Shown: in pieces, positions 17,503-64,000 of the stretch
Numbering within the stretch: position 1 is the first letter of the stretch
How the letters are laid out: each line of letters opens with the position of its first letter
NCBI GenBank assembly: GCA_009103225.1
Contig: RHPI01000984.1
Location: 15,551-79,550 of the forward strand
DNA: 64,000 bases
From: Chlorokybus atmophyticus
Lineage: Eukaryota > Plantae > Mesostigma and Chlorokybus algae
Reading direction: 5' to 3'
Translations under genes and position numbers: made by a program
Notes under the pieces: generated by a model
Told to the model about the DNA's origin: nothing
What the model saw: only the letters and a program-made list of their open reading frames with translations
Databases searched by the model: none

Positions 17503-17515
17503 AGGGGGGGAGGAG
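17503..17515 (+). promoter_or_regulatory. Polypurine tract AGGGGGGGAGGAG
   Basis: All-purine run immediately before the 3' LTR start TGTAAC. Confidence 0.9.
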
Positions 17516-18183
17516 TGTAACAGTCAAGGCCAAATTTTGTGATTTTCATGGCCATTTTAGGCCTTATTTGTAAGGTACATGTTTTATGACTTGTGGCGGA
17601 TATCGGCGAGTTATGAGTCTGCCGCGGATCGACCGGGGCCCCAAGACCAGTCCGGAAGGTGCCAGAAAACGGAGGGCCAGTCGAGAAGGGCTCGACCAGA
17701 TTTCTGGAAGGGCCTGGCGCCAAGTAGTATAACTTGACCATATGAGCAGCAAATTAGGAGATCTTTGGTGCGTTGGAAAGGTCTAGAAGTGTACTACAAG
17801 ATTCTGCAAGAATATCTTAGCTTCTAGTTCCGTCTAGCGCTAGAATCGTCTAGACAGTAGCATGTGCAGACTGGTAGGTATAAAAGTGACATTCTACAAT
17901 TTGCAATACAACCTTTAGCTCCCTAGTTTCTTGTGTGCAAGCTTGGTGGTGGTTAGCAGGGGTTGCTAGCGTGTGCCCACCGGTGTGTGCTTGCTTGTGT
18001 GACGATCCAAGGCGCTACACAAGTCGGTGTGTAGCTTCGAGCGCACGCGCGTGCATACGCGAGTGGCGGGGCGCGCGTGTGTGCTTGGCAGAGGGGGCAA
18101 GGTTCCGGTGTGAATACTGTGCCTTGGTGAGAGGGTTGTGGATTGGACCAACTCACAGGTATCAAGGCACGAGCACCGTCACA
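17516..18183 (+). repeat. 3' LTR of chromovirus family A
   Basis: TGTAAC..GTCACA; near-identical to 2810-3473. Confidence 0.92.
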
Positions 18184-39240: not shown

Positions 39241-42200
39241 GACACGCATCTTTCGTATGCGTGTCTACCATGTGTCGAGAGATAGTGCGTGAGACAGCAT
39301 GACATGGTCTCATGGTGTACAATAGCATGCGGACATGCATGACAAGGTGGTTTACGACGAGTTCAAGTCACGATGAGGGAAGGCACGACAAACTGCAAAC
39401 TAGGTGTTGAAAGACGTGTTGCGACACTACACTTCACCCAGGTTTGATGACCGGGATTTGCACCTGGCATTAGCTGAGTTTGCGGTGAACAATGCATGGC
39501 AAGAGTCACTGCATAGCACTCCGTTCTTTTTGAACTATGTTAGGCATCATGTGACGCCTATGTCTCTGCAAGTTCAGCCGTTTAGCAAAGTGCCTTCGGC
39601 TAGAGACTTGACAGAGCAGATGCACGCTGCATTGGCTAGTGCAAAAGTCTGCCTGAGAGCAGTTTAAGATCGGCATAAGATGTATGCTGATCGGTAGCGC
39701 AGACCTAGAGAGGGTCTGAAGGTTGGGGACAAGGTCTTGTTGAGCACTAAGAACATAGGGCTCAAGACTAGTGGTGTACGTAAGCTCCTGCCCAGGTGGC
39801 TTGGGCCGTTCAGTGTCTCTGCAGCTGTGAGAACACGAGCCTTTAGGCTTGAATTGCCAAAGAGCATGCGTGTCCACAATGTGTTTCATGAGGCGCTGCT
39901 CAAACCATACAAGAATAATGGTAGAATGCAGCCACCTCCACCTCCTGTTGCGGTGGAGGGCGACCTTGAGCATGAAGTCGGAAGCCATTTATGGCAAGCG
40001 GTTCGGGAAGTTCAGTCAGGAAGGGCTTCCAAACAGAGTACCTTGTAAAGTGGCTGGGTTATGGTGAAGAGCATAACCTCTGGGAGCCAAATTCCTAAAT
40101 TGGCAAACCGTACTGCTAAGTTGGAAGAGTATAAGAGTGAGCTCAAATCCACAGGTGCCACTACAAGGAGCTTGTGCTTAGTTGCAATGTGCAACATTCT
40201 CTTATGTGACATGCCAACATGCGCGCACTATTACTTAATATCAGAGTTGGTTGTCACTCCCGTGACTTGCACATGTTCTACGCGTAGTGTGCGATGATTC
40301 AGAAGGGTTGGCCACCCTTGTTGGCATTTGTCGTGCGGGGCTTGTGCTCCATCAGTTTGCAACGTGGAAGTTGCAATGCAAGTGGGGAGGAATGTCACGT
40401 CCAAAGCCCTGGCTTAAGTCACTCTCAATTTCTTACTTATGTGGTAAGTAAGAAGGACTAAGTGAGGATTCCGTATAGTCATGGTGAATGTAGCACCTGG
40501 CATACGTGCTCATGAAGTCAGTTCTTATGCACTTGGTGTATGAGGACCTAGCTACTACATAAGGCATTGTCTATTAGTAAGTACAGGACTGGTCAGTGTC
40601 AAGCGCAGAGTCGCTAAGGCACCAAGGGTGTTGCTTGTGTTGATGTATCCGAGGGTGGACAGAGTCAGCCTGTGCTGACAGGTCATCGCATAGGTGGTGA
40701 GCTCCTGTTGGCCTCGGACATTCTATGTGTCAGGTCGGAGAGCAGCGGGTAGTATGAAGGCATGGCTACCACCTTGTGATGGTAAGGGGGAGTTACTGGC
40801 CTTGCAAGACTACTCGTGCGTGGAGTGCCTGGCTGAAGCTGTTGAAGGGTGCTCTCCCATCTACTCCCTTGTGGGTTGTTGCTGGTAGCAAGGTGTGTGG
40901 TAAAGTACAACTGCTTGTGCAGAAGTTTGTGACCCTCTCAGCAGGTAAGTTGAGAGGTCAATGTGACACATGCGGACTATGTGGTTCATATGGACTTATC
41001 GCTTATCAAGCTGTGTCGTGCTTAGGTTGAACCACACGAACACGTCCTTGCCTCCTTGAATCGCTCATAATGCTACACAAGGCATTGATATGTGGTAGCA
41101 CAAAGCTGATTACTGTCTACCCTGGCCATGTGAGCCTTGTATCATGATGTTACCACTGTGTAACAATGATTGCCATTCATGGTGACCCTGAGACAGTTGT
41201 GAGCTGTTATTCGTATTCCACGTTAATTTGACGATGTCTGCCATTGCGTGGCTGCTACACACAGCAATACGCTGCTAATGGCATAATGTGTTGTCCTCTG
41301 TTGAACATTCCAAATAACCACCGTGTAAGAATGATTGCCATTCATGGTGACCCTGAGACAGTTGTGAGCTGTTAATCGTAATTCACGTCAGTTTGACGAT
41401 GTCTGCCATTGCGTGTCCGCTACACATAGCAGTAAGCTGCTAATGTGTAGCGGACACGCAATGGCATATCGTGTCACATAGTGTCCTGTGTTGGACATTC
41501 CGAACAAGCCTAGGTTGATGTCCTGTGATGGGACAAGTCCTGTGTTGGACTTGTTAGCATAGGAACAGTACCTTGTATCTATATTAATGTTTCCGAGATA
41601 ATCTCAATAATACTCCCGAGGTGGAATTTAATGATCCCTATGTAGGGAACTGTCATGTGTACAGGTTGGCGCGCAGTGACAAGGCCTTGTTGGCCTTAGA
41701 CATTGTGTATCAGGTCGGAGAGCAACAAGTGAAGTATATAAGCTTGTGTAAGCTTGCAATTTGCATCATCATGTGAGGTGCCCTACGAGTACCAACTTGT
41801 GTGGGGGGTGCCTGCTTTGGAGCTGTTAGAAGGGCTCTCCCTCACATCCCTTATGGGGTGTGATGTTGTGTATGTGTGCGCCACCTTAGGTGCATGTGTG
41901 TGTCTGGGGCTGGAGCTGAGTGGAGGGGCGTTTGATCATCCTCTTCCTTTTTTGTGCGGAGCTGCTGGGCTGCTCCCGTGGTGTCTTGCCGCTGTACCAA
42001 GTGGTACTCACACAAGTTGTGTTGCTAGACTTCCTCCTAGCTGGAGTTGTAAGTCCTTTGTTTTGTGCACAAGTGTGCGGTGGCTACCAGCAAGTAAGTG
42101 AGTAGAAATGTCACAGTCGCAAGAACTATCTTTTTTCGTTCTCTATGCATGACGCATATAGGGAATGAACCTTTTGCAGTCACGCAATTTTACGCACAGT

Positions 42201-45200
42201 CACGCTGCATTGCGGCGTGTCTGTACGCAACACGTGACGCAGCGTGAGTAGACGTTACACTATTGGCTAATACACGTTTTCATATATGTGTTGTTTAGCA
42301 CAATATATGCCACTGATGATGCAATGCTTTGTGTTGAATGATGCATGTGATTGTGCTAACCAATATACGCCTTTTTATAAATATTATGTACAATTTATCA
42401 AGATTTCGTTTCGTTCGGATTATTGTTCATTATTGTTGGTTCGTTTGCTGTCACTCAATGATGTCGCCAAAACAAAGCAAGGTTATATGAACCTTAAACT
42501 TTATGATAACAATATTGTTCAGGTTCTTGTTCTTTGTTCGTGCGGTCATGCCCGAACCTAGGTTCGGCCCCAGCCCTACTGATTAGCACTGATTGATCTA
42601 CTCATTTATCTGATTGATTAAGTATCAACCTGTAGATTATTACAAATCATTACTGTAGGAGGGATTCTGTCAGCAGGACTTCTTAGCGGCGCGTGTGCTG
42701 TGCAGGCACAAAGCCCCGCTCAATCAAGCAGTTTTTCCGGCAACTTTCCGCCACTGTCATCATCATCAGCCTGAAGCTACTCCGACGTGTTTGCGGAGTG
42801 GCATCCACGTGGACATTCAGAGGGGTAGGTTGTTGCCTTGGCTTTGGTGCAGGCGTGAGGCAGAAGGTTGGCGGCATTGTTGGCGTGGTCTGTTGCTGTG
42901 ACGTGCGAAAGCTTGGGGAGGAGGTGGCACATACAAAGGAAGCATAAGGGTTAGGGTGAGGGTAAGGGCGTGATCAGGCTGTCAAGGTCTGGCAGCTAAC
43001 CACGGGGGTGGCTAGCCAGGTCGACCGCCTTGCGGCTGTTGCTGGCTGGCTTTCCGCCTCTGCCTAAGATATGGCGTGGGCGTGCTGTCGCTGTTGAGCT
43101 TGGCTGTTGTTTATGGCGATGGTGACGGTGGGGGCGACGGCACTGCCGGCTGTGTCGTTGGTAAGGCTCGAGGTGTCGGCGTTTTCTTGCGGCGAGAGTC
43201 AATGGCGAGCCGAATTAATTGACAAGCACAAAATTGTGCCAGTCTTGCGTGGTTCTGGCTCTTCCTTTTTTGCAGAGTCGCTGCGGGGAGCTGCCGTCCG
43301 GTCCTCCAGCAGGCCGCACCGCACCTTCACCAAGCGCTAGCTTGCTTCTAAAGCAACCGTCCCTGGAGTAAACCTATCCGACATTGAGCCAACGGAACAG
43401 GTGAGCTCGGTTGAGGTTCTCATTCTGTGGCAGATTCACTTGTGAAACAAGGAGAGCTAGCTAGCTGTACAACTATGCCTGGCTGTGTCTGTTGCGCATC
43501 CGGCAACAACCGGTTGTGACTCTGCCAATTGACCGTTCGCTCATGGTGTTGCTTTTGCAGAGTATCTCCCAGCAAGACTGCCCTTTGTTCTAAGTGCTGC
43601 GGGCCATTGCCATACCCTCGTTTGCTGTCTTCTGTACACCAGCGATTGTTGCGGCAGCTGCTGTTGGAGCTGTTGCCAGCCATATTATGAAAGAAGAGGC
43701 GGCATCTGCTTTCGATGATGCACCTGTTGTGTAAGTTGCTTGCTGATGTGGGATCACCCTCAAAGTGGTGACGAATGGCTGTCACGCGTTGAGTGCTCTG
43801 ATGCATTTGTGCGCGCACAGGCACTACAAGTCAAGGCACAATAAGCAGGATACGGTGCGCAATGCGTTCATGGTCAGTCAATGCGTTGCCTTTGATGCGG
43901 CGTTTGCCGCATCCGTCATGATGCTACACCCTGTGGTCGTCGCTGTTGCGGCCGCTGTTGGGACCGTCACCATGGTGGACTTGCGAAGTATGATCAGCTC
44001 CACGGCAGGGAATGACAGTCACAGCGGGCCAGAACTGGCGGCCATATCCAAATCAGCAGCGTCAGGAGCCCAATCGAACAATCAGGCTGCAGGTGTTCGC
44101 ACATGTACACACCTGCAGACTCACAGCATACCAATGTGTGCATATGTGCTGCATACACGTGCTATATACAGATGCTGTCGTTCTTTGTGTATTCCTTCAA
44201 GACCTGCATTAGTTAGATCTGCTGCGCATAAAAGCAGTCCTTTGTCTTCATTGAATTGCAGTGAGCTCAGTCGGACTGCACACAGTCTACACCAAGTGCA
44301 TTGGCTACATACAAGCATGTAAGCACAGCTTACCAAACAGTATGGCATGCTGTTGCATATGCTGTGCACAAACTTTTTGGCATGCCTTCTAGAACTCAAT
44401 GCTGCACTGCCTTCTTTGTTGTGCACATTGCCTTGTTTACCAAGGTACTGTGCACCACAACGTCAGTGTGCACACTACCTAATTGGCACTGTATTGGTTA
44501 AGTGCGTGTGCCATCATCATGCACACCTGTGAGCCCATGCCATGCCTGCGCCCCGATTACCTGGAGCACCTCATGTTCACTCAACAGCCCACGTGTTGCT
44601 TTGCAGGAACAAGCACAGACACAACAGGTACAACCGCACATAGCAACAATGCTGCCAGCAGCAACAGCAACAGCAACAGCACCGTGTTGGGACGCACTGT
44701 ATACCTATTGCATTGTTAAGCGTGTCCAGAACACGCTCAACAGGTATTGCCATTGCAATTGCCAATTATGCCGTCTCGAGGAGGACCTTACCATCTCTCC
44801 CGCACCCAGACAGGAGTAGCTGGCTTGCGACTGATTGACCGGTCTGTCATCGTAATCCATTCAGGTCAACTGGCTTGCAACACTGCGCGATAAGTACAAT
44901 CTTCAAGTGCTTTTGGACTGGGAACCGCATAAGGACACATTGGAGACTTGAACCAGTAAATATGGGACTGCAGGCTACAAGGTCTGTGCACATGTAACTG
45001 TCATGCTCGTGACCAACCAATACTCAACGCACCAATGCGTGGTGCACGCTAGGCATCACGCAGTTGCTCAGCACAAACACTGCTTGCAAAGGCCCCCCAG
45101 GGGGGGCCCCTGCGATTGCAAGCTTGTTGATACTGTCGTGACTCAGCTAGTGGAACTGCAGGTAGTGGCGGTGGGAAATTTGAATGTGTTGATGTCGTCA

Positions 45201-45418
45201 AGCAAACTGCGGAAGGACATGCAGTTGCGAATGCCGTTGCGCGGCAGTGGCAGCTGCTGACATGTCTGCTGAACCAAATGCACAATCAAGGCAGGTGGCT
45301 CGTACTAATCGTCTTCAAGGTTGGTTCGCTCGCACATACACCCCTTGCTGTCACTGCCATTGGGCGAACAGTTGTTTTCAGACTCAAGGCGTTCAGTGCC
45401 CCGCAATTGTATCATTAA
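39120..45418 (+). repeat. Segmental direct duplication, copy 1
   Basis: Colinear with 49531-55765, about 90-97% identical by eye. Confidence 0.93.
39241..42115 (+). mobile_element. 3' fragment of chromovirus family B (integrase C-terminus, chromodomain, PPT, LTR 40393-42115), copy 1
   Basis: VLxDVLRHY, FAVNNA, KLLPRWLGPF, VHNVFH, frameshifted chromodomain YLVKWLGY, PPT GGGGAGGAA, then TGTCAC..GTCACA. The LTR end is inferred. Confidence 0.8.
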
Positions 45419-47750
45419 TTGTATTTGGTGCGCAGGGTGCTATCCCACGAATGCACATTCCCGAGAGGCTACGGGAATTCAGATGCTACTAAATAGATCC
45501 CGACTCGGACACATCTCAATCGGTTTTTACAAGCTTCCTGGCGGGTTTGGAGAATAAATGGGTCTTCTTGTCTTATTGCCAACGCGCCGTGACGCACGTG
45601 CAAAAGGTGTCACTGTTGATGGTTGGCTGAATGCAGGCCACACCTCTGTGATCTGGTCGCCAACCGTGCCTACAAAACTGCATTGTCCTCTTGATATATG
45701 CAATCAGCTCACCTCCTGGTTGCATAAACGTGCAGGTGTCTCAGCTTGCGTGGAGGATACATGCTTGTGGATTTGAGGTAGTCATCGATCAGATAAAACC
45801 TTATTCCATGGCATGGGCCCAGTTTATTGCGCAGGGTTTTGCGGAAGGCACCAAGGTTTGCGCACACGTCCCTTTTTCGAACATGAAAACTTATTGTATG
45901 TGATGTCGGCTCTGTGGTCATCTAAATGCAGTTCAGGTTCTCGTGGTGGGAGACCCAGATTATGTGCGGATTGCCAAACGGGACAACACGAGCACGTATG
46001 ATGATGGGCACGGAGTATCAGTGGAATGGCTGCAGATATCCACAAGGATTTTCAACCAGCACAACGCAGGCAACGCTGCTTGTACCAGTGTTCTTGAAGG
46101 TTCGTTTCCTTACACATGAATGGTCACAACAGTTGCGCTTGTGTAACGACTATGCGAGCGCCAAGGCAATCGCGCAGACGCCGTTGAATGCTATAGGTGG
46201 TACTGCTGCCATCGCATTGCCTGCAACCCTGTGAGCTTCTCTCTTGGAATGTGCAGGGCGGTAACCGGGAAACCCGCCTCCCTGAATTGCTACAATCGTG
46301 GACATATCATCAGATCGACCCCGATTCTGAGTGTGATCCAGGTTCTGAAGGGTTATTGGATTATTTGAACGATGTGTTGCCCAAGTTGCAAGTTCATCAC
46401 CCAACCGAGGATTGATTTGGCTTACTGGTATATTGACACATTTGATTGATACGATGCGCCTTAGTTGTTGGACAATTCAGTAGTCTTAAAGATGTGTATA
46501 AGTTATAATTGTGAATTGGTTTGTAATAGCCCATCTTATAGTGTGCCGTACCCGCTCTCTTGCATGGGTTGTGGCTGCAAGAGTCTTGTAGCCCTAACAC
46601 ACCACAACAACAGCCCTTGATGGTGTCAGCGCAGTCGGCCTTAACCCCTAATGCCTCTTGTCGCTCACATGGGACGATGATGTGGTCGCGCATGACCATC
46701 ATGGTGTGACGGTACAAGCTTTGTGCTCCGTGCGTGCAAGTGACAGACGTGCGAGCTATGCCGCCCGCACGCTGCCCGACTCGGGCCTCAAGATAATGGA
46801 TTGGCATGCTGAGACGGCCATGAAGCTGCGTATCATATAGAGTGTGCTGCCGGCAGCCCGCAGGTGCAGTGAAGCACACCACTACAAATCGCCCAGTGGC
46901 CTTTCAACTATCTAAAATATCAATATTTACGCTGATACTATCAACATCCAATGTTGATCGTATCAACACGAATGTCGAGAGCACCGCCTTGATGAGCGTC
47001 AACATACAATTTGATATTAGCAATAATCAAGCTGATGTAACAAACAGTTGCATCTCCTAGATCAACGCAAACGTCCAAAATTTACCATGCGCGATCAATG
47101 TGAATGTTTTTGTACATGCATGTTGACAGTGCAAGAAAGCCATGGATACCATACAGCAATATACATGTTGAAATCATGTTCATGGCATGCTACCGTTTAC
47201 TTGTCATCTACCCATGTATAATGTATTGGACTGTGCTTGTGCTCGGGTGTGGAACTTGACAGCTCCTGACTCAAGTAGGTGCCACCTGCCCCAATGGCAG
47301 TTCAGTGCATTGCTGCAAGTGGGGGCGCAATGCACGAATGTAGGAACTGGGCAGCTACGAGGAGCGCTAACGCATGTACTCAATAGCATCCACCTACAAG
47401 TAGAAAGGTGTTCATGCAGCTGTGAGTACATTCAGTGAAGTGGCATGTTCTGCTACAATTGCAACATACTACGTACACACCTTGGCTGCAAAATTGTCAC
47501 AGACGCATTGGGCTTGCTGCCAGGGTCCTAATGTGCCACAAACTTCCTGGTTGTTGCGGTTGTTATCAGTGTTGCCCTGTTGTGTCTTCTTTGCTGTTAT
47601 CGCAAGCACAGCAGCGCAACAACAAGGACCCCCCGAGGACGAGCAAGGTCACCGAGGAGAGTGCTGAGGATGCCGTGCGTTCAGACCAGATACAGACCTG
47701 CAAAAGGAGAAGTTCAGCACTGGACACCATAGTTTTACTGCAGGCAGACA
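43270..47750 (+). pseudogene. Spliced gene of unknown function with hydrophobic and Cys-rich segments, degenerate
   Basis: Phase-compatible exons near 43560-43730, 43830-43851 and 43920-44092. A later N/T-rich frame and a Cys-rich frame end in a TM-like FLVVAVVISVALLCLLCC. Several stops. Confidence 0.3.
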
Positions 47751-49530: not shown

Positions 49531-52500
49531 CAGAGGGTTGGGACACCATGCTACTATGCGACAGGTGTGTTGCCGGTTAGCACATGGAGTGCCTTCGTCC
49601 ACCACTTGAGGAGATCCCTGATGGAGCATGGTACTGTCCGGCGTGTACGAGGACTACGCGATGAGCGTGTGAGTCAGCTGCAGGCGCACGAGGGCGTTGG
49701 CGCTCAGCTGCAGGGGGTGGTGACACGCATCTTTCATATGTGTGTCTACCATATGTCGAGAGATAGTGCGTGAGACAGCATGACATGGTCTCATGGTGTA
49801 CAATAGCATGCGGACATGCATGACAACTTGTAGGTGGTTTACGACGAGTTCATGCCATGATGAGGGAAGGCACGACAGTGCAAACCAGGTGTTGGAAGAC
49901 GTGTTGCGACACTACACTTCACCCAGGTTTAATGACAGGCATTTGCACCTGGCATTAGCTTGGTTTGCGGTGAACAATGCATGGCAAGGATCACTGCATA
50001 GCACTCCGTTCTGTTTGAACTATGTTAGGCATCATGTGACGCCTATGTCTCTGCAAGTTCAGCCGTTTTGCAAAGTGCCTACAGCTAGAGACTTGACAGA
50101 GCAGATACACGGTGCATTGGCTAGTGCCAAAGTCTGCCTGAGAGCAGCTCAAGATCGGCATAAGATGTATGCTGATCGGCAGCGCAGCCCTGGAGAGGGT
50201 TTGAAGGTTGGGGACAAGGTCTTGTTCAGCACCAGAAACATTGGGCTCAAAACTAGTGGTGTACGTAAGCTCCTGCCCAGGTGGCTTGGGCCGTTCACTG
50301 TCTCTGCAGCTGTGGGAACACGAGCCTTTAGGCTTGAATTGCCAAAGAGCATGCGTGTCCACAATGTGTTTCATGAGGCGCTGCTCAAACCATACAAGAG
50401 TAATGGTAGAATGCAGCCACCTCCACCTCCTGTTGAGGTGGAGGGCGACCTTGAGTATGAGATCGGAAGCCATTGTTGGCAAGCGGTTCGGGAGATTTAT
50501 CAAGGGCTTCCAAACAGAGTACCTTGTAAAGTGGCTGGGTTATGATGAAGAGCATAACCTCTGAGAGCCAAATTTTAACTTGGAAAACTGTACTGCTAAG
50601 TTGGAAGAGTTTAAGAGTGAGCTCGAATCCACAGGTGCCACTTGAAGGAGCTTGTGCTCTGGAGCTTGTGCTCAGTTGTAATGTGCAACATTTCTTCTGT
50701 GACATGCCAACATGCGCGCACTGTTACTTAGTATTTTAGTTGGTTGTCACTCCCGTGGCTTGCACATGTTCTACGCGTAGTGTGCGATGATTCAGAAGGG
50801 TTGGCCACCCTTGCTGGCAATTGTCGTGCGGGGCTTGTGCTCCATCAGTTTGCAACGTGGAAGTTGCAAGGCAAGTGGGGAGGAATGTCACGCCCAAAGG
50901 ACTGGCTTAAGTCACTCTCAATTTCTTACTTATGTGGTAAGTAAGAAGGACTAAATGAGGATCTCGTATAGTCATGGTGAATGTAGCACCTGGCATACGT
51001 GCTCATGAAGTCAGTTCTATGCACTTGGTGTATGAGGACCTAGCTACTACATAAGGCATTGTCTACCAGTAAATACAGGACTGGTCAGTGTCAAACAGAG
51101 TCGCTAAGGCACCAAGGGTGTTGCTTGTGTTGATGTGTCCGAGGGTGGACAGAGTCAGCCTGTGCTGACAGGTCAGCGCATAGGTGGCGAGGTTGTGTTG
51201 GCCTCGGATATTCTATGTGTCTGGTCGGAGAGCAGCGGGTAGTATTAAGGCATGGCTACCATCTTGTGATGGTAAGGGGGAGTTACTGGCCTTGCAAGAC
51301 TACTCGTTCGTAGGGTGCCTGGCTGAAGCTTTTGAAGGGTGCTCTCCCATCTACTCCCTTGTGGGTTGTTGCTGGTAGCAAGGTGTGTGGTAAAGTACAG
51401 CTGCTTGTGCAGAAGTTTGTGACCCTCTCAGCAGGTAAGTTGAGAGGTCAATGTTGTGACACATGTGGACTATGTGGTTCATATGGACTTATCGCTTATC
51501 AAGCTGTGTAGTGCTTAGCAGGTTGAACCACACGGACACGTCCTTGCCTCCTTAGATCGCTCGGACATAGTAGTACACAAGGCATTAATATGTGGTAGCA
51601 CATAGCTGATTACTGTCTACCCTGGCCATGTGAGCCTTGTATCATGATGTCACACCACCGTGTAACAATGATTGCCAATCATGGTGACCCTGAGACAGTT
51701 GTGAGCTGTTAATCGTGGTTCACGTTTGTTTGACGATGTCTGCCATTGCGTGTCCGCTACACACAGTAGTAAGCTGCTAATGGCATATCGTGTCACACAG
51801 TGTCCTGTGTGGGACATTCCGAATAAGCCTAGGTACCCCAATCCTGTGATGGGACAAGTCCAATGTTGGACTTGTTAGCTCAAGAACAGTACCCTGTATA
51901 TATTGATGTTTCCGCGATAATCTCATTGATACTCCCGAGGTGGAGTTTAACGATCCCTATGTAGGGAATTGTCATGTGTATAGGTTAGCGCACAATGACA
52001 AGGCCTTGTTGGCCTTAGACATTGTGTATCAGGTCGGAGAGCAACAAGTGAAGTATATAAGCTTGTGTAAGCTGACGATTTGCATCATCATGTGAGGTGC
52101 CCTACGAGAACTAACTTGTGTGGGGGGTGCCTGCTTTGGAGCTGTTAGAGGGGCTCTCCCTCACATCCCTTGTGGGGTGTGATGTTGTGTATGTGTGCGC
52201 CACCTTAGGTGCATGTGTGTGTCTGGGATTGGAGCTGAGTGGAGGGGCGTGTGGTCATCCTCTTCCTCCTTGGTGCGGAGCTGCTGGGCTGCTCCCGTGG
52301 TGTCTTGCCGTTGTACCAAGTGGTACTTAGCACACAAGTTGTGTTGCTAGACTTCCTCCTAGCTGGAGTTGTAAGTCCTTTGTTTTGTGCATAAGTGTGC
52401 GGTGGCTACTAGCAAGTAAGTGAGTAGAAATGTCATAATCGCCAGAACGTTCTTTGTTCGTTCTCTATGCATGACGCATATAGGGAATGAGCCTTTTGCA

Positions 52501-55500
52501 GTCACGCAATATTACGCACAGTCACGCTGCATTGCGGCGTGACTGTATGCAACACGTGACGCAGCGTGACTAGACGTCACACTATTAGCTAATACACGGT
52601 TTCATATATGTGTTGTTTACCATAATATATGCCACTGATGATGCAATGCTTCGTGTCAAATGATGCATGTGATTGTGCTAATCAATATACGCCTTTTGAT
52701 GAATTTTATGTACAATCAATCAAAGATTTTATTCGAATTTTTGTTCAATATTGTTGATTCGTTCGATGTCACTCATTAATGTCGCTTGCTTTGTGTTGTG
52801 TGTGTATGTGCTGTGTTCTGCAAAAACAAAGCAAGGTTATATGAACCTTAAACTTAATGATAACAATATTGTTCAGGTTCTTGTTCTTTGTTCGTGCGGT
52901 CATGCCCGAACCTAGGTTCGGCCAGCCCTACTGATTAGCACTGATTGATCTACTCATTTATCTGATTGATTAGATATCAACCTGTAGATTACAACAAATC
53001 AATACTGTATGAGGGACCGTCAGCAGGACTTTCTAGCGGCGCGTGTGCTGTGGAGGCACAAAGCCCCGCTCAATCAAGCGGTTCTTCCGGCAACTTTCCG
53101 CCACTGTCATCATCATCAGCCTGAAGCTACTCCGACGTGTTTGCGGAGTGGCATCCACGTGGACATTCAGAGGGGTAGGTTGTTGCCTTGGCGTTGGTGC
53201 AGGCGTGAGGCAGCAGGGTGGCGGCATTGTTGGCGTGGTCTGTTGCTGTGACGTGCGAAAGCTTGGGGAGGAGGTGGCACATACAAAGGAAGCATAAGGG
53301 TTAGGGTGAGGGTAATTGCGCGATCAGGCTGTCAAGGTCTGGCAGCTAACCACGGGTGGCTAGCCAGGTCGACCGCCTTGCGGCTGTTGCTGGCTGGCTT
53401 TCCGCCTCTGCCTAAGATATGGCGTGGGCGTGCTGTCGCTGTTGAGCTTGGCTGTTGTTTATGGCGATGGTGACGGTGGGGGCGACGGCACTGCCGGCTG
53501 TGTCGTTGGTAAGGCTCGAGGTGTCGGCGTTTTCTTGCGGCGAGCGTCAATGGCGGGCCGAATTCTTCGACAAGCACAAAATTGTGCCAGTCTTGCGTGG
53601 TTCTGGCTCTTCCTTTTTTGGAGAGTCGCTGCGGGGAGCTGCCGTCCGGTCCTCCAGCAGGCCGCACCGCACCTTCACCAAGCGCTAGCTTGCTTCTAAA
53701 GCAACCGTCCCTGGAGTAAACCTATCCGACATTGAGCCAACGGAACAGGTGAGCTCGGTTGAGGTTCTCATTCTGTGGCAGATTCATTTGTGAAACAAGG
53801 AGAGCTAGCTAGCTGTACAACTATGCCTGGCTGTGTCTGTTGCGCATCCGGCAACAACCGGTTGTGACTCTGCCAATGGACCGTTCGCTCATGGTGTTGC
53901 TTTTGCAGAGTATATCCCAGCAAGACTGCCCTTTGTTCAATGTGCTGCGGGCCATTGCCATACCCTCGTTTGCTGTCTTCTGTACACCAGCGATTGTTGC
54001 GGCAGCTGCTGTTGGAGCTGTTGCCAGCCTCATTATGAAAGAAGAGGCGGCAGCTGCTTTCGATGATGCACCTGTTGTGTAAGTTGCTTGCTGATGTGGG
54101 ATCACCCTCAAAGTGGTGACGAATGGCTGTCACGCGTTGAGTGCTCTGATGCATTTGTGCGCGCACAGGCACTACAAGTCAAGGCACAATAAGCAGGATA
54201 CGGTGCGCAATGCGTTCATGGTCAGTCAATGCGTTGCCTTTGATGCGGCGTTTGCCGCATCCGTCATGATGCTACACCCTGTGGTCGTCGCTGTTGCGGC
54301 CGCTGTTGGGACCGTCACCATGGTGGACTTGCGATGTATAATCAGCTCCACGGCAGGGAATGACAGTCACAGCGGGCCAGAACTGGCGGCCATATCCAAA
54401 GCAGCGTCAGGAGCCCAATCGAACAATCAGGCTGCAGGTGTTTGCACATGTACACACCTGCAGACTCACAGCATACCAATGTGTGCATATTGCTGCATAC
54501 ACGTGCTATATACAGATGCTGTCGTTCTTTGTGTATTCCTTCAAGACATGCATTAGTTAGATCTGCTACGCATAAAAGCAGTCCTTTGTCTTCATTGAAC
54601 CGCAGTGAGCTCAGTCGGACTGCACACAATCTACACCAAGTGCATTGGCTACATACAAGCATGTAAGCACAGCTTACCAAACAGTATGGCATGCTGTTGC
54701 ATATGCTGTGCACAAACTTTTTGGCATGTCTTCTAGAACTCAATGCTGCACTGCCTTTTTTGTTGTGCACATTGCCTTGTTTACCAAGGTACTGTGCACC
54801 ACAACGTCAGTGCGCACACTACCTAATTGGCACTGTATTGGTTAAGTGCGTGTGCCAGCATCATGCACACCTGTGAGCCCATGCCATGCCTGCGCCCCGA
54901 TTACCTGGAGCACCTCATGTTCACTCAATAGCCCACGTGTTGCTTTGCAGAAACTAGCACAGACACAACAGGTACAACCGCACATAGCAACAATGCTGCC
55001 AGCAGCAACAGCAACAGCAACAGCACCGTGTTGGGACGCACTGTATACCTATCGCATTGTTAAGCGTGTCCAGAACACGCTCAACAGGTATTGCCATTGC
55101 AATTGCCAATTATGCCGTCTCGAGGAGGACCTTACCATCTCTCCCGCACCCAGACAGGAGTAGCTGGCTTGCGACTGATTGACCGGTCTGTCATCGTAAT
55201 CCATTCAAGTCAACTGGCTTGCAACACTGCGCGATAAGTACAATCTTCAAGTGCTTTTGGACTGGGAACCGCATAAGGACACATTGGAGACTTGAACCAG
55301 TAAATATGGGACTGCAGGCTACAAGATCTTTGCACCTGTAACTGTCATGCTCGTGACCAACCAATACTCAACGCACCAATGCGTGGTGCACGCTAGGCAT
55401 CACGCAGTTGCTCAGCACAAACACTGCTTGCAAAGGCCCCCCAGGGGGGGCCCCTGCGATTGCAAGCTTGTTGATACTGTCGTGACTCAGCTAGTGGAAC

Positions 55501-55765
55501 TGCAGGTAGTGGTGGTGGGAAATTTGAATGTGTTGATGTCGTCAAGCAAACTGCGGAAGGACATGCAGTTGCGAATGCCGTTGCGCGGCAGTGGCAGCTG
55601 CTGACATGTCTGCTGAACCAAATGCACAATCAAGGCAGGTGGCTCGTACTAATCGTCTTCTTGGTTCTTGGTTCGCTCGCACATACACCCCTTGCTGTCA
55701 CTGCCATTGGGCAAACAGTTGTTTTCAGACTCAAGGCGTTCAGTGCCCCGCAATTGTATCATTAA
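49531..55765 (+). repeat. Segmental direct duplication, copy 2 (ends at an assembly gap)
   Basis: Colinear with 39120-45418. Stops at the n at 55766. Confidence 0.93.
49721..52437 (+). mobile_element. 3' fragment of chromovirus family B, copy 2 (LTR 50886-52437)
   Basis: Same motifs as copy 1 and the same chromodomain frameshift. Confidence 0.8.
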
Positions 55766-55766: not shown

Positions 55767-55922
55767 GACGCAATCACACACATGCAAATATATGCGGATC
55801 TTGAGTCTGAGCACATCCAGCAACCACATTAACACACACACACACACACACACACGCATTATTTACGCTGGACAAGTTGGAGTACACTTTGTTACGAGAT
55901 GAGAGCAAAGCACTGCAACTCA

Positions 55923-57865
55923 TCACTTTGATTCGATGGCATCCATTTCGTCCAATGCGCGCTGTGTTGACGACGGCGGAGCAGTCTTGTTATGTTTCTC
56001 GTACTGCAGCTCCAAGAACGTGTAGTACTCTGGCCGATTGTCTGCCTCAAGGTAATGTCGATTGCCAACAGGCCACTGCTTCCACAGCTCGAGCCGATAG
56101 TAGTTGGCAATGTCAATTGGCTCGACCATCAGCCGGAAAGTGTTGCCTCTTGCACACCAGACATTGGACTTGCTGAATAAGTCAGGAGGCAACATGCCAT
56201 CCATGTACCATTTATATGCTGAACGCCAGAAGTCCCGCAGAACCCTGTCATGTCATGTCTTGTTGGTGCGGAGGTCATATCAGCACTGAGCCATCAGGTG
56301 AAGGCCTAATATTGCAATGCATCATATTTTGTCTGACCTGCGTGCTCGCTCGACTCTTTTCAGGGGCCCTTCTTGCGGGCTGTCATCGCTAGCGCGGTAT
56401 GCTCTGAAATCCGCGTAGTAGTCTGGCGAGGTCTGCATGAAGGCTTGTATTGTGTCCATGGCGTCTTGCACCTCATTGCGCCACTTGTCAGTAAGCTCTG
56501 TCTCATTTTTCCGCAGCTCGGGAACGCTAAGCACGCCCACTCGCGGTGACTCGGAAGCGCTGCAAAGTCAAAGGAACTCAGACTACGTGCGTTATGTGGT
56601 AAGCCAACACATGCAAACCAGGCCGCAATGCGAACCTAAGTTGTGATGGCATAGGCTGCATGAAGGCCGGTACAATGCCCAAGTGATTCACGAGGGTGTT
56701 ATACCCAACCCAGGGTTCCTGTTGCATCAAGATGGAAACAATAAACCACTCTGATTGCTGATGCGCAGTTGTCAAGCAATGCAAGGTGACTGTGCGCATG
56801 TTGCAAGCGCATGTCTCCCAAACAGAAGTGTACAGCTTGGAGCAAATGCAACACACACTCTCTTTTGTGAACTTGCCTGCTGATCGCCAAGGGTGAAGTA
56901 GCTAAACTTCCTAATCCCGTCGGGTACATGCTTTCTAACTCCGGGCGGTTTGAAGATGACCGGAACCAACCAGCCGAAGCGATTCTGCTCCTCGTAAACC
57001 TTGTTCGCTATGTTGGTGTACTCGTCGTGCGTTCCCGCTCCCATCTTGTCATCCTCGGTTGGTACTTTCAGTGAAAACCGTTCGTAATGCTCATCACAGG
57101 CAACAATCACCTGAAAGGTCAAATGCACAACACACAACACACACTTGTCAAGGCGCCCCCTCTAAACATTCACAAGTGAAGTGCAAGTCAGTACAATCGC
57201 TCTTGTTTCCCAAGCATACAAGTTCAGTTGTGTACATAACGCACACACGAGTACGCGCACGCACAGTGTGTACTGATGCGGTGGGTATAGGAAACTTCTA
57301 AACAGTACAAGCGGCACAATGTCTGGAGGTTGTGCGTTCAAGTGCATTGTATGTATCCAGATGATTGACAAGTGACAATTGACAACCACTTTAGGACAAG
57401 CGATGGGCGCCTAGAGCAAGCATGGGTTGCATTGCAGAATTGCATCTGTAAAATCTTGAGGTGATGAAACTCGGATTTGACTGTCTGCTTGACACTTGGG
57501 CTGCCATGCCACGCGCATGCAGGCAAGTGCATGAGTGTGCGTGCAAGTGCTGTGGTGTACAATGGGTGTGTGCGTAGACGTACCAGAAGAGCCAGCAGTG
57601 AATCAGGGTGCAGCGGCGTGCATGCACGAGAAAGCAACAAAGATTGGGGAGAAGGCAAAGGTGAAAAGGGGGCGAGAAGACAAAGGCTAGTAGAGTGGAA
57701 GAATGAACGAGAGAGAGATGGCAAGACGGCAGGTTGACGGCTGCTACTTACCAAGGAAAACAGCAGTAGCTGTTGCTAATCACCCCGCCTCAAACCACTG
57801 CCTCCGCCTCATGCGCCGTCGCCGCCAAATCTTGTCGCGCTGCCGGTGACAATGATCATCGGCTT
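55923..57865 (-). CDS. EDS1/PAD4/SAG101-family lipase-like + EP-domain protein; C-terminal exons intact, N-terminal lipase part disrupted or unresolved
   Basis: Exons 57110-56877, 56718-56636, 56559-56338 and 56244-55923 splice in phase (GC-AG, GT-AG, GT-AG) into 286 aa. The product contains DYYADF, RVLRDFW..LPPD..W..FRLMVEPIDIANYY..HYLEADNRPEYY. Upstream lipase-3-like pieces are KPMIIVTG (57865-57842), LATATAVFL, RCxxxxxP, DIVP (57323) and THDEY. Confidence 0.85.
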
Positions 57866-58349
57866 GTCCTTGTGGGCGGGGGCGGCGGCAGCGTTGTGGT
57901 CGTCGCCGTGGGATGAAGTAGGCGTCATTCTTGCCACCTGGCCAGTGGGCATACCACCACCGCTGCAGCATAGGTTGGCACTCACTCCGCCGCTTCTGAT
58001 GCTCTCATGGTCACACTTGCATGCACCCAGCGGTCTGATCAGGTTTGTGTGATTAAGAAGACATGTTCATGGGGCGGGTGATTGCACAAATGGGCGTGTG
58101 GGGTGAGTGTATTGAGAATATGTCATCGCGTGCAAGTCTGCGAGTATCAACGAATAGAAGTGTGTGCGAGTGTCAGTGCGAGAGAGAGTACATGTCTGTG
58201 ACTGTGTGGCTGAAGAGCATATGCATGTGGAATTGTATGTGGGGGACTGCATGTGTAGATGAATGGTGCGCTCAAGTTTGATCGATGCAGTGGATGTGTA
58301 TACGTTTAGTTGTAGGATGCAGCGTTTTTTCAACACATGCATAATGCAC

Positions 58350-59860
58350 GGGTGTCATGCTGTTGGCCTTCCGCTGCAACACCAGATCCGCATGCAGCTG
58401 ACAGCATCCCTGAAAATTGTACCATGCTCAGTGTTGTAATTGCGAGTGTAGCCTGTCTCAGCAATGTACCCAATTTGCTTGCTCGCATGGATGCAGCATG
58501 CTTAGGAAGCCACCCAACCACCATTTTCTTGACAGGGCAGCGCGGAGAGAGCCGCAGTGATACACGACGCAATAATACATAATTTGCAGCATCCACCATC
58601 GACTGCAACAGCGCTTCTCGGCGCTGTCTCGTCCGCTCGAAACGCTTGTTATTTATTTCATTTCTTCGCTGGGCACACTGCCTGCACCAAGAGGACAGGC
58701 TAGTGCGCATAGCCTCGCCTAGCAGCGACTATATAGTCAGCCAATGATGCATGGCTTGTCACATAGCCTTACCCAACTAGGATAGCTGTGCGGCAAATGG
58801 TTGGTTGGTTGCCTATGACAGGGGGCGATGTGGTTGCACATGCACGATTGCATGGGTAGAGACTTGCCATCATGTATAGTGTACGACTGCAGAGTACAAG
58901 TGTAGAGTACAAGTGTTGCTAGACAATAATACACACGTCATTTGGATGGCAGTATGTATGCCTTCATATGAAGAGGATGGGACATCCTGGTCCACCCTGC
59001 TTCGGGTGTAAGTGAGTCAACCGAAATTGTACATGTGATAAATCAGAAGCCAGCTGGCGCCCTACCCGTGCAGTCAAATCTCTGTCAGGAAGGCAGGCTC
59101 CAGAGAAAGAGGCCTCTTTACAAACGCTGCCATTGTGCGCTGACCAATGTCTGTGGAGCAGTGGTCGAAATACACCTCATCCAACAAGCACTCTATCCTC
59201 GCCAACACTGTTGGGCTCGAATTACTCCACGAACCAGCACTTGCGGATGTTGGTATGCCATCCGAAGGTACATCTGCGAAAGGTGGTCCGGGGGGGCGAT
59301 ACTCTGACTGGTCTTGTGGGTGAGTGCGCCATGCTTACCAGCAGGCAGATCCCATCGGGTAACAAGCACTGTTGGGTAGTCGCACTAAGGGTGTTGCAAC
59401 GAGCGGAATTAATCGACCAACTCGTTGTAGTTTCATACTATAACCAGCCCGGCATGTTAGTCAATCCATGCGCAATCTTTGACACAACGTATTCGAGCAC
59501 GATCAGCATAGCATGCATCATTGCAAGTGCCGTCAACCTGACATAACTCTCCATACCCTCTTCGCCTAGTGTGCTTTGATATGAGCAGACAGAATGGCAA
59601 CAGGCACATATTTGCCGTACTTACAGGTGCCGTAAATAATAACAATCAGGCATGGTAGGCGCCTATTACTCCTGTCTGTCTGAAAGGGCGTTCACCTCGT
59701 CGTACATGCTCTGCCTTTGCGCCAGTGTCGGGTTGGCAAAAGCTGTCGCTTTGTCGAAGCCAATGAGCCCCAGCTTTGCTTTAGAACTCGCCAGCGCCCA
59801 TCGATGCAGGACTGTGGCCTTGCCGTAGTCGTGATCTAAGTCAATAGCAACTGCTATGCA
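58350..59860 (-). other. Unassigned exon-like segments between the TNL and the EDS1-like gene
   Basis: Frames AVAIDLDHDYGKATVLHRWAL..DRQE, LTALAMMHAMLIVLEYVV and RNEINNKRFERTRQRREALLQSMVDAANY have plausible splice sites. No family recognised. Confidence 0.35.
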
Positions 59861-60644
59861 AATCTCAAAAGCGTAGCAAACATGACGAGCATTGGCGATG
59901 CTGCAAAATGTGTTCGCCTCTGCGCAGATTGCTCTGCTCCTTGCAGCGTGGGAAGGCTACACAGTCCTCGACCACCCATTGGTGACCTGATCGTGGAGAT
60001 GCGACTGCCATTGTAGTCAGAGCACCAACCCTTGCCACCGGTGGTGTATTCAGCGATTGGGTGGGTCCCATGACAAATAGCCATCACAGCCAGTACACCA
60101 GCAGCAGGTGCTCAACACCATAACCATCGCCTGCAGTGTCAGCAACATGTGTAGGTCGGTGTCTTAGAGTGGGTGTGCTTGCGTTGAGTGTTGTTTGTGA
60201 ATCTTGATGTGCATGCAGGTATTCAAGTCAGCATGCATACTCGTACGTGTAGGTCGACCTACCAAAGTGGCTGCGTGCGTGAGCGCGTGTCAGCCTTGTT
60301 GGAGAAGGTATGTGCACATGCGCGTGCTTGCATTGGTCTGCGTACGCATGTGCATGCTGGTTCCTGTGCCATAACGCACAAGTTTCCAGTCAGTCTGTAA
60401 GACGTGTGTTGCTGTAAGCATATGTGTGTACACAAATGTGAGCAACTGTGCAAAATGAGCATGTGTGTGCGGCCGCTCTTACCCTGGTAAGGTGAGGGGC
60501 AACCATACCCTGCAGCGCCGATTGCCTCACCCGCCTACATACTTTGCGCACATACCAGCGAGCACATACGGATTCTGGCAAGGCCGCCCAATCGCTGTAC
60601 TTGCTGCCGTCCTGCTCCTGCAGTGCTGCGATTGCACTGATATA

Positions 60645-63600
60645 TCAATAAATAGCTGACATTGAAGCAGACTTGCTTCCGTCCTCCTCCTCTTCCGCCG
60701 CCTCCCGCTGGTGCTGCTGCAGCACAGCCACAACAGCAGGAGCCAACCTACTGACAGATTCCGGCAGCAATGTCAAGTCTTCGCACCCGGTTAGGTCCAA
60801 CTGTTGCAGAGCAGCGAGGTTGCCGAAGGACTCCGGCAGCGATGCTAAGCTGATGCACCCGGTTAGGTCCAACTGTTGCAGAGCAGCGAGGTTTCCAAAG
60901 GACTCCGGCAGCGACGGCATGCCTACGCACGAGTTCAGGTCCAACCATTGCAGAGCAGCGAGGTTGCTGAAGGACTCCGGCAGCAACCCCAAGCTGTGGC
61001 AGGAGTTCAGGTTTAACCATTGCAGAGCAGCGAGGTTGCCAAAAGACTCCGGCAGCAACGCCAAGTTGACGCACGCGCGTAGGTCCAATCTTTGCAGAGC
61101 AGCGAGGTTGCTGAAGGACTCCGGCAGCAACCCCAAGCTGTGGCAGGAGTTTAGGTTCAACCATTGCAGAGCAGCGAGGTTGCCAAAAGACTCCGGCAGC
61201 AACGCCAAGTTGACGCACCCGCTTAGGTCCAATTTTTGCAGAGCAGCAAGGTTGCCGAAGGACTCCGGCAGCGACGCCAAGCTTACGCACACCCGCAGGT
61301 CCAACCCTTGCAGCGCAGCGAGGTTGCCGAAGGACTCTGGCAGCAACGCCAAGCTGTCGCAAAATTTCAGGTCCAGCTCCTGCAGAGCAGCGAGCTTGCC
61401 GAAGGACTCCGGCAGCGACGCCAAGCTGTCGCAAATTTCCAGGTCCAACCCTTGCAGAGCAGCGAGCTTGCCAAAAGACTCCGGCAGTGACGCCAAGCTG
61501 TCGCAAAAATTCAGGTCCAACCATTGCATAGCAGCGAGCTTGCCAAAGGACTCCGGCAACGCCGCCAAGCTTTTGCACCCACTCAGGTCCAGCACTTGCA
61601 GCTCAGCGAGTTCACCAAAGGATTCCGGCAGCGCCGCCAAGCTTTCGCACCCACTCAGGTCCAGCACTTGCAACTCAGAGAGTTCACCAAAGGAGTCTGG
61701 CAACGCCGCCAAGCTTTCGCACCCACTCAGGTCCAGCACTTGCAACTCAGAGAGTTCACCAAAGGAGTCTGGCAACGCCGCCAAGCTTGTGCACTTACTC
61801 AGGTCTAGCACTTGCAACTCGGCGAGTTTGCTGACAGACTCGGGGAGCATGCTCAAACGCCATGCAGTGAGATGCAGAGCCTGTAGCCTAGTAAGCTCGC
61901 CAAGCACAGGCACCTCCTTTAGAACTAGACGGTTCTGTCTGTAATTGCCAGTGGGGTAAACCCGCAGCTCCAGGACTTGCAGCTCCTTGAGGTTTCCTAA
62001 GAACTCAGTCCGCAGCCTTTTGACATTGAATCTGGTGATGGTTACATGTACGATGAGGACGACCAATGTTGTGTGTGCAGCGCGGCATTGCATAAGAAAT
62101 TGTTCAAGGCTGAACAGCTCGCACTTTTCCACTCCAGATATACCAGGTCTTTAAAAACCCACTTGGTCACGAAAAATGCTTTTCTGATTGGTTGCACGAA
62201 AGAGTCGCACGCAGTAGTTGCACGCAAGAGTCGCACGCAGCAGCCTTCTTTCTTCCTTGTTTCTCTTTGTTGTTGGCACGCAAGAGTGTGAGTGTAAACT
62301 TCGCCATCCCAATCAATCGTGCCAAGGTCCAGCATGTGGAGGCGGGGCATGAAGGCCATGCCTCGCAATGGTGGGCTCCTATTGACACCAGTCCAGGACA
62401 TAGTCTCGGCGTTGTCAAAGCCCTGCATGCAACAACAATGCAATGAACAGCAATACACACGTGTTCACTCCACCAGTGTGTTGTAACACACTCCTAGAAC
62501 ACCGTGGATTGCAAGTTCTCATTGGATGCATGCAAGCAATCCTTGACAGGCCAGTAGAACGGGACATGAGGTGAAGGAACCATGACGGAACGTGGGCATT
62601 GCAAGCACCTTCATGGACTTGGCGCTCAATGCCATTGGCGACCAGATGTGCCTGGGCGGGTTGGCACAATTGGCAATCATTCGCCCCATGTCCCGAAGTT
62701 GGTCATGCACCGAAAGGAATTTACTTTTGCCATAACGCAGATTAAAATAACGCAACTTGAACATTCGGTGATGTTCGGACAAATCATCCAGGGCTCCACT
62801 TAAGCGAACGAGGGACCATTCCACCAGGCAATTCAGCGCATCTGACCCGCCCCACGCTGGAAGCAGCATGTCCTTGCTCTTCCCCAACGCAAAGCAGCAG
62901 ATATCCAAAAACACTTGCTGCGTCTCGGGTTGTAGGTAGTCGTAGCTGAGCTTGAGCTTGTCCCAGAGCTTGTTGTCAGCTGTACCTGCCACTGCGGTTG
63001 CCTGCTGCAGTCGCCACAGTGCGTCTTTCCAAGCCTGCACATCACCCTTTCTGCGCGTGTGGAGAAAGGAGCCCACGACCTCCAGTGCAAGCGGCAGGCC
63101 CTCACAAGCCTTAATGATATCTTGAACAATGGTCTCCAGATCTGCAGGCACTACTTGCGATCTGAAGGCATGTTGACAGAACAGTTCTCTAGGGTACTGA
63201 CCGTCAAGCGGACCAACGTCCTCCACCAACATATGCTTCTCATGCCCCTTGATTAAGTTGCAACTACGAGAGGTCACCAGCACACGACTGCCGGTACCAA
63301 GCAGAGGGCTGGCGTCCTCCAAACCGAAAGGACCAAGCAGGGCTGCTTCTTGATCATTACTCCAAATGTCATCAACAACGAGCAGCACCTTCTGCCCTTG
63401 CAAGCGTGCCTTGAGAGTTGCCTTTCCTTCAGCAATGGAGTTGAATTTATAACTAGAGTTGGGACCACTCCCAAGCTGTTCAAGCATCTGCTGTTGCAGC
63501 TGTACCAGCCTCCCATTATCTTGACATGGTTCGTTTCCGACCTCTAGAAAGCAGCAGCTGCCAGCAAATGTGCTGCGCAGCTTGTTGTAGATTGCCATTG

Positions 63601-63979
63601 CCAGCGTAGTCTTCCCAATGCCACCCATGCCCCATAGCCCTAGTAAGACGACCTTGCTTCCTCTGGTAGCAGCACTCAACTTCTCGAGTACAGCTTTAAC
63701 GCGGCGATCGATGTCCACCGGGTTTGCGGCAACATCCAAAGGTGGGCGGTCCAACGTTTCCAGCACGTCGTCCACCACTTTCTTGGCTAAACAAACCGGG
63801 TCACTGACAAACAATAGCAACCATCAGGAAACCGCACATGACAACCTTAGTGGAGATGTTTCCCAGTGACACCTTACCCATTCTCAAGCCTCAGGCCCGT
63901 TTTTCCAAATGCTTCTGCGAGCGCATCACGGTATGCAGACTCATTCTGGATATATCGCTGCTGGCCACTCAGGCATGCG
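60645..63979 (-). CDS. TIR(tail)-NB-ARC-LRR (TNL-type) immune receptor, 5'-truncated by the window edge, with one apparent 2-bp frameshift
   Basis: Exons 63979-63878, 63803-62609 and 62422-60645. Motifs: P-loop GMGGIGKTT, kinase-2 VLLVVDDIW, GSRVLVTSR, GLPLAL, RNBS-D FLDICCF, VHDQLRDMGR. TIR-like C-terminal helices YRDALAEA..G..L.NGD..LAKKVVDDVL. 16 LP(E/D)S LRR units. Confidence 0.9.
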
Positions 63980-64000
63980 CTGAAAGCACAAAACGTGTTT

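Follow-up and report, generated by a model that had tools for sequence, protein, structure and literature searches.

A transcribed EP-domain gene of the alga Chlorokybus atmophyticus, probably a front-truncated member of a family of SEFIR-EP paralogs

The EP domains of the EDS1 family form a pocket for nucleotides made by TIR enzymes, for which EDS1 R493 and PAD4 R314 are required. The published boundaries of the domain are residues 300-541 in PAD4 and 385-623 in EDS1 (10.1101/572826). According to the standard view, which a preliminary description of the DNA analysed here had adopted, only seed plants have EP proteins. This remains the usual statement in the field, but short EP-like sequences in green algae are mentioned by Kennedy et al. 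(2026, preprint), and UniRef gives a protein of Elliptochloris the title 'EDS1 EP domain-containing protein'. In the literature on EDS1 in algae and non-seed plants, we did not find the primary report behind these green-algal sequences, and our literature search yielded no paper treating SEFIR together with Chlorokybus, or with both EDS1 and algae. Short algal EP proteins would have been lost from the survey of Lapin et al., since sequences of 400 residues or fewer were dropped (10.1101/572826). In bacteria, SEFIR proteins protect the cell from phage, and it is their SEFIR domain that depletes NAD+ (10.1101/2024.02.11.579819). By what route TIR-type immune enzymes pass on their signal in plants or algae without EDS1 is an open question. 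Here, we describe an EP-encoding gene on the minus strand of a 64,000-nucleotide stretch (positions 15,551 to 79,550 of contig RHPI01000984.1; hereafter the window) from Chlorokybus atmophyticus. Chlorokybus belongs to the earliest-branching streptophyte lineage. The gene is probably a transcribed, front-truncated paralog of a Chlorokybus family in which a SEFIR domain, a putative signalling head, is followed by an EP domain, and this copy would be either an EP-only partner or decoy, or a young duplicate.

The EP domain is encoded by the last two of four coding exons, all on the minus strand. Exon C (56559-56338) codes for the long first EP helices, including the motif YYADFRAY, and exon D (56244-55923), with the stop codon at 55925-55923, for the core of the domain. 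Pfam EDS1_EP (PF18117) matched exon D alone with an E-value of 6.2e-10 (39.5 bits, gathering cut-off 23.1) and exons C and D together with E-values of 1.3e-11 to 3e-11, over positions 16-122 of the 211 of the model. A phmmer search of the PDB sequences retrieved EDS1, PAD4 (E 4e-5) and SAG101, followed only by antibody light chains with E-values of at least 0.4. The motifs of exon D read FW..LPxDxF..W..VEPIDIANYYR..HYL..NRPxYY, and YYADFRAY aligns with YYDFFKRY of PAD4 (residues 333-340; phmmer alignment to 7xey_B). In the family alignment, all six nearly invariant residues (E, P, A, Y, Y and R) are kept here. The residue equivalent to EDS1 R493 is a Tyr (RPEYY), both in this protein and across the whole clade of SEFIR-linked proteins described below, as determined by mapping with the family alignment and the coordinates of the phmmer match to 7xdd_B. 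An Arg is kept at this position in the Chlorokybus EP proteins P0014, P0026 and P0042.

The structural comparisons gave the same picture. The AlphaFold2 model of exons C and D, computed from an input alignment of 76 relatives, is all-helical, with a mean pLDDT of 94.8 and a pTM of 0.89; the two helices of exon C (residues 11-42 and 62-87) have pLDDT values above 90. In a Foldseek search of the PDB, the top 24 chains were all EDS1, PAD4 or SAG101, with a probability of 1.0 and query TM scores up to 0.79, and all others had probabilities below 0.5. A second aligner, VIA, gave Z scores of 15.2-19.7 for the EDS1, PAD4 and SAG101 chains versus 7.0 for the next fold. In Arabidopsis, the EP domain spans residues 385-623 of AtEDS1, 300-541 of AtPAD4 and 291-537 of AtSAG101. 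Exons C and D thus encode a genuine EP domain, homologous to those of EDS1, PAD4 and SAG101 far beyond chance. The aligned span corresponds to residues 286-463 of the 541 of AtPAD4, and the algal protein ends there. Given the published boundaries, the algal EP domain represents the first two thirds or so of the seed-plant domain. A fold search of the ESM Atlas returned no match with an informative name that reached a TM score of 0.5. A search of the AlphaFold DB clusters with the same model also retrieved some small proteins from outside plants, as well as bacterial ones named 'DUF4760 domain-containing' (probabilities 1.0 and 0.75, TM scores ~0.3-0.5). P0026, an anchor-EP protein of Chlorokybus, has a sub-threshold match to Pfam DUF4760 (E 0.043). 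DUF4760 is possibly a deep relative of the EP fold.

Two further exons precede these, exon A (57110-56877), defined by RNA contigs and splice sites, and exon B (56718-56636, 83 nt), which codes for a linker. Joined, exons A to D make 861 nt, i.e. 286 codons and a stop, and the frame is open throughout. The introns at 56245-56337 and 56560-56635 are of the GT..AG type on the minus strand, with RNA-contig joints from 56243 to 56337 and from 56559 to 56636. That at 56719-56876 has a GC donor (CAG before GCAAGT), and an RNA contig with a loose end at 56721 continues with 13 letters of the sequence from 56880 onward. The four exons, canonical splice sites, single GC donor and 286-residue C-terminus of the preliminary description were therefore borne out by the splice sites, the open frame and the RNA contigs, which support all three internal junctions. 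The expression data are contigs from three RNA runs with one species label, in which 14-56% of the words sampled from the locus are present.

Three features come in addition to that description, namely half a SEFIR domain in exon A, a spliced 5' exon ending at 57752, and a stop codon in the latter. The 5' exon (57752-57971, minus strand) has RNA support over at least 57752-57810, its upstream end being uncertain. It is spliced to exon A across an intron of 641 nt (57111-57751) by a joint from 57108 to 57750 (CT..AC on the plus strand), which is present in contigs of the RNA runs X1 and X2 and is the sole junction seen onto exon A. RNA depth is ~4 in this intron versus ~885 in exon A. Because an in-frame TAG (57778-57776) lies eight codons ahead of the exon A junction, the 5' exon is non-coding for the EP frame. 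An ATG scan placed the first in-frame start at 57044, which gives a longest possible product of 264 residues. At the other end, an RNA contig extends the transcript to at least 55867. The allele of this copy is itself transcribed, as an X2 contig shows no differences over 56876-57108, where its closest relative (the twin, P0093) differs; both twin copies are represented in the RNA, with ~390 of 1023 depth units carrying other letters at 56927 and 56937. The EP gene looks like a separate transcription unit. A predicted protein of 233 residues from this gene, P0001 (scaffold Chrsp258; Chlat1 protein 3722), is identical to the window exons and is labelled Chlorokybus atmophyticus in EukProt/JGI, in agreement with the non-seed green lineage that had been deduced for the host. 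It is an ab initio model that lacks exon B altogether as well as the last part of exon A; its start codon (MYTTEL) is placed within the intron 57111-57751.

Upstream of the EP domain, homology points to a bacterial-type SEFIR domain, of which exon A is the C-terminal half. Using tblastn, exon A is 84% identical to residues 122-204 of the Chlorokybus protein P0002, within the SEFIR match of that protein (residues 68-200), and begins at the third SEFIR strand (VIVACDEHYERF). Exon B matches residues 207-245 of P0002, which include, in a low-confidence AlphaFold2 model, the last helix after the SEFIR strands. P0002 itself matches Pfam SEFIR (E 3e-10) and TIR_2 (E 3e-9) over residues 68-200, and the PADLOC bSEFIR model at E 3.6e-21 for the whole protein and 1.3e-19 for its SEFIR domain alone. 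The best PDB sequence match of this domain is the Bacillus SEFIR structure 5y8f. By itself, exon A matches nothing in Pfam or PADLOC and does not amount to a complete SEFIR domain, and tblastn with the front half (residues 68-121 of P0002) detected no counterpart in the 57.1-60.6 kb region of the minus strand. A degenerate front half was sought in the 5' exon, where 'KPMIIVTGS' and 'RRGD', stop, 'QQLL' had been picked out by eye. Smith-Waterman alignments with P0002, P0003 and P0004 were no better than those of shuffled sequences, and this candidate was rejected. We also rejected homology of EP to the C-terminal part of bSEFIR: the match of P0002 ran to residue 367, but EP alone gave no match and the SEFIR domain alone accounted for 69 of the 74 bits.

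Sequence comparisons place the window gene in a family of Chlorokybus SEFIR-EP paralogs, with which it is collinear. Over the aligned residues of the 286, it is 82% identical to P0002, 81% to P0092, 73% to P0003 and 95% to P0093. P0002 (Chrsp103, 415 residues) and P0092 (Chrsp235, 416 residues) have a hydrophobic N-terminus (recognized by eye), a complete SEFIR domain, a linker and a short EP domain. P0003 (Chrsp114, 680 residues) consists of NLR-type leucine-rich repeats (LRRs), SEFIR and EP, and P0004 (Chrsp5) of EP, TIR, a partial SEFIR and a second EP. The twin P0093 (Chrsp249) is the closest to the window gene. Thus, P0002 and P0092 have the anchor and full SEFIR, and P0003 has LRRs and the SEFIR front half, whereas the window copy and P0093 are devoid of that front half. 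The predicted front exons of P0093 map to 59857-59703 of the window.

We searched 1.84 billion representative proteins with exon D using phmmer and obtained 80 matches, with P0001 at the top. Most of them are short EP-only proteins covering Pfam model positions ~4-120. Names were looked up for 30 of the 80, and the named ones come from Chlorokybus (several scaffolds), Elliptochloris bilobata, Stichococcus sp. RCC1054, Ginkgo, Taxus, Arabis and Eucalyptus. One metagenome contig with a match shows split gene calls, as is typical of eukaryotes. In an unrooted maximum-likelihood tree of 35 EP segments, the seed-plant domains form a single separate clade (98/93). The window gene and its twin group together (98/81) within a clade of SEFIR-linked Chlorokybus proteins (97/89), which is sister to Elliptochloris (97/91), and there are at least three EP lineages in Chlorokybus.

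A protein of Stichococcus sp. RCC1054, P0084 (790 residues, MMETSP1473), combines a Lipase_3 domain containing GHSLGG with a short EP domain. Among PDB entries it matches EDS1 best (8e-24), and the closest homologs over its full length are PAD4 proteins of grasses. An EDS1-like lipase-EP architecture therefore also exists in a chlorophyte (trebouxiophyte) alga. P0088 (728 residues, JGI metagenome) similarly has Lipase_3 (GHSLGG) and a short EP domain. A word-indexed search with the Stichococcus EP region gave no matches. The occurrence of EP-only or EP-fusion proteins in Chlorokybus, Elliptochloris and Stichococcus, together with the separate seed-plant clade, supports the idea that the EP domain predates seed plants. 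The preliminary description had proposed that the EDS1 family is either older than assumed or was acquired independently. Its broader part, an EP domain older than seed plants, stands, and P0084 supports an older EDS1 family better than the window locus does; the tree, being unrooted, shows no direction and does not separate an older origin from independent acquisition.

We propose that the proteins of this family are built of a bacterial-type SEFIR domain, which belongs to the TIR superfamily, a linker and a short EP domain that is a true homolog of the one in seed-plant EDS1, PAD4 and SAG101. In the intact forms, this module would lie behind a hydrophobic N-terminal anchor (P0002 and P0092) or an NLR-type LRR (P0003). 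The SEFIR/TIR-type domain may act as a NAD-cleaving or oligomerizing signalling head, and the EP bundle as an attached receiver or partner-binding module. One algal chain would then do what seed plants split between EDS1 dimers and separate TIR enzymes. Both the window copy and P0093 would have lost the SEFIR front half, with an mRNA that opens with a non-coding exon and a putative product of ~264 residues comprising half a SEFIR and an intact EP helical bundle. Such a product would be incapable of SEFIR chemistry, and only EP-mediated binding could remain.

Several observations weigh against this proposal. The SEFIR part of the AlphaFold2 model of P0002 is of low confidence (pLDDT 37-74). Because Tyr replaces the R493-equivalent Arg, ligand binding of the seed-plant kind is doubtful, and the corresponding contacts would not be expected in this copy. 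The RNA contigs are unstranded, and rarer isoforms with another 5' exon may exist; in the annotation of the twin, the exons equivalent to 59.86-59.70 kb are the ones next to exon A. Short upstream ORFs open from two ATGs in exon A (57094 and 57052) and from several more in the 5' exon, which would argue against efficient translation of the EP frame. Finally, protein change has not accelerated in the truncated copy. At the protein level, at which the rates were compared, the distances to the outgroup P0003 equal those of the intact P0002 in every exon (89 versus 90 of 106 in exon D and 45 versus 46 of 74 in exon C), and the window branch is short in the EP tree. Given the lack of acceleration and the short branch, a 'decaying relic' is unproven.

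The gene has an NLR gene as its upstream neighbour on the same strand. An LRR ORF at 60645-62132 (minus strand; Pfam LRR_14, E 9e-58) encodes RPS4B-like repeats, and the NB-ARC ORF of the same gene lies at 62519-63820 (minus strand; Pfam NB-ARC, E 4.3e-30). Just upstream of the latter, at 63820-64000 on the minus strand, one frame reads ...YRDALAEAFGKTGLRLEN, a stretch similar, as judged by eye, to the last part of plant TIR domains. The NLR next to the EP gene may therefore be a TNL extending beyond the window. Between the two genes, a spliced plus-strand transcript (57760-59630) overlaps the 5' exon of the EP gene head to head. Its intron is at 57974-58535 (plus strand, joint from 57971 to 58534, GT..AG), X2 covers 58534-59633 continuously, and no Pfam domain was found in the local ORFs.

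Downstream of the EP gene, there is a direct duplication of ~6 kb (39241-45418 and 49722-55765), 90-98% identical, with integrase-like ORFs inside. The right copy ends 150 bp from the 3' end of the EP gene, in a retroelement-rich region with a (CA)n run at ~55840-55860. Weak SEFIR/TIR-like exons are present on the plus strand at 45496-45858, perhaps to ~46120; tblastn with the SEFIR front half of P0002 gave E 1e-3 there, and Pfam TIR_2 a match below cut-off (E 0.013). RNA contigs whose loose ends lie at 55504 and 55660 run into the sequence of the 45496-45858 copy, and these exons are therefore probably expressed. A second NLR-type LRR ORF lies at the left edge of the window (28-960, plus strand; LRR_14, E 3e-20). 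A Ty3-like retroelement is present in two copies (5087-6512, 15079-17520 and 2805-3473/17510-18183), with reverse transcriptase and integrase ORFs 92-94% identical.

Alternative explanations of the gene concern what it is and what might lie in front of it. That its resemblance to EP is the convergence of a generic helical bundle, or that the scaffold is a seed-plant contaminant, is scarcely credible. Helical bundles do readily yield middling structural scores, but here the sequence match is significant and includes a long shared motif (VEPLDIANYYR, HYL, RP.RY), and the Z scores of 15-20 stand against 7 for the next fold. As for contamination, the paralogs are found on at least six Chlorokybus scaffolds, the neighbours are of algal type, the RNA support comes from runs sharing one species label, and seed-plant EP domains branch separately (98/93). 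The gene might also be a true EDS1 or PAD4 ortholog whose upstream lipase exons were missed, for which the strong EP homology would speak, as would the Lipase_3-EP protein of Stichococcus in showing that this architecture occurs in algae. We regard this as highly improbable: tblastn with the lipase-EP proteins P0084, P0064, P0070 and P0075 found no lipase exon in the window, EP is preceded by SEFIR, an order shared with every close paralog, the 5' exon seen in RNA does not code in the EP frame, and the EP domain is of the short type and groups with those linked to SEFIR in Chlorokybus and not with seed plants or the Stichococcus lipase-EP clade. It is likewise very unlikely, if a little less so, that the upstream NB-ARC-LRR gene runs on into the EP exons as its C-terminal end, forming one NLR-SEFIR-EP receptor. 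The two are 3.5 kb apart on one strand, P0003 has LRR, SEFIR and EP in one predicted protein with an LRR end resembling that of the window, and minus-strand introns (60363-60481 and 60130-60261) go on downstream of the LRR ORF. However, the LRR frame ends at 60645 with a stop codon in the interior of an exon supported by RNA, every frame of the spliced continuation is interrupted by stops, the plus-strand transcript intervenes, exon A is joined only from 57752, and the SEFIR front half that such a receptor requires is absent. No RNA contig at the locus joins the NLR to SEFIR-EP. The predicted P0003 nevertheless suggests that an NLR-SEFIR-EP fusion was one ancestral arrangement.

Within the favoured interpretation, a front-truncated SEFIR-EP paralog, the question is whether the copy works. 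It could be a functional EP-only protein, a trans-acting partner or decoy for the intact SEFIR-EP or the anchor-EP paralogs, much as the truncated NRG1C sequesters EDS1-SAG101 in Arabidopsis (PMC12856790). This possibility, which we consider plausible though short of an even chance, is in keeping with expression in three RNA runs with both twin copies seen, an open frame over four exons with the invariant residues kept, a protein that changes no faster than the intact paralogs, and the retention of the truncated form twice. The upstream ATGs weigh against its translation, half a SEFIR is unlikely to fold, given the low-confidence model, and the twin may be a very recent segmental duplicate, the locus being next to the 6-kb duplication and retroelements. 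The upstream ATGs and the half-domain would point to a relic, and the open frame, the two retained copies and the equal distances to constraint or a very recent origin. The evidence is balanced between an EP-only partner or decoy and a young undecayed duplicate, with a slight lean to the duplicate. A bolder scenario, which we consider rather improbable, is that EP originated in green algae, where it served SEFIR/TIR NAD-cleaving domains as a receiver or partner, first in cis, and that the stub-SEFIR-EP protein is a working EP subunit acting in trans, either paired with intact SEFIR-EP or anchor-EP paralogs or in the service of the adjacent NLR. If true, it would be an algal forerunner of the EDS1 heterodimer.

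In Chlorokybus, a domain whose EP fold is predicted with confidence is connected to SEFIR, TIR and NLR modules. This shows that EP is older than seed plants, and makes the Chlorokybus EP proteins concrete candidates for nucleotide-binding and pairing tests. The intact paralogs illustrate the point better than the window locus. What the latter adds is an expressed, truncated EP-only form, duplicated, beside an NB-ARC-LRR gene and amid duplications and retroelements.

Compared with the EDS1 family, the window gene has the same EP fold and conserves YY.DF., FW, LP.DF, VEPLDIANYYR, HYL and RP..Y. Its best structural matches are OsEDS1 (8zf0_B), with a Z score of 19.7 and an rmsd of 2.1 across 164 residues, and AtPAD4, with Z scores of 16-17.5. 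In contrast with that family, it has no N-terminal lipase-like domain, hence no LLIF dimerization helix; the Lipase_3 domain looked for with Pfam in all exons and upstream ORFs was absent. Its EP domain is of the short type, not the full one of ~240 residues, and belongs to a clade apart from the seed-plant domains. The assignment to the EDS1/PAD4 family made in the preliminary description thus holds for the EP domain; with no lipase, a short EP and a Tyr in place of R493, the predicted protein does not qualify as a family member in the strict sense. As regards bacterial bSEFIR proteins, the SEFIR domains of the intact Chlorokybus paralogs match bSEFIR with E-values of 1e-19 to 1e-22, but the region after SEFIR in the bacterial proteins has no detectable similarity to EP, and the window copy has only the back half of the domain. 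Finally, the Stichococcus protein P0084 shares with the window gene a short, algal-type EP domain of a neighbouring clade in the EP tree. It differs in having an EDS1/PAD4-like lipase domain with GHSLGG, where the window gene has SEFIR instead.

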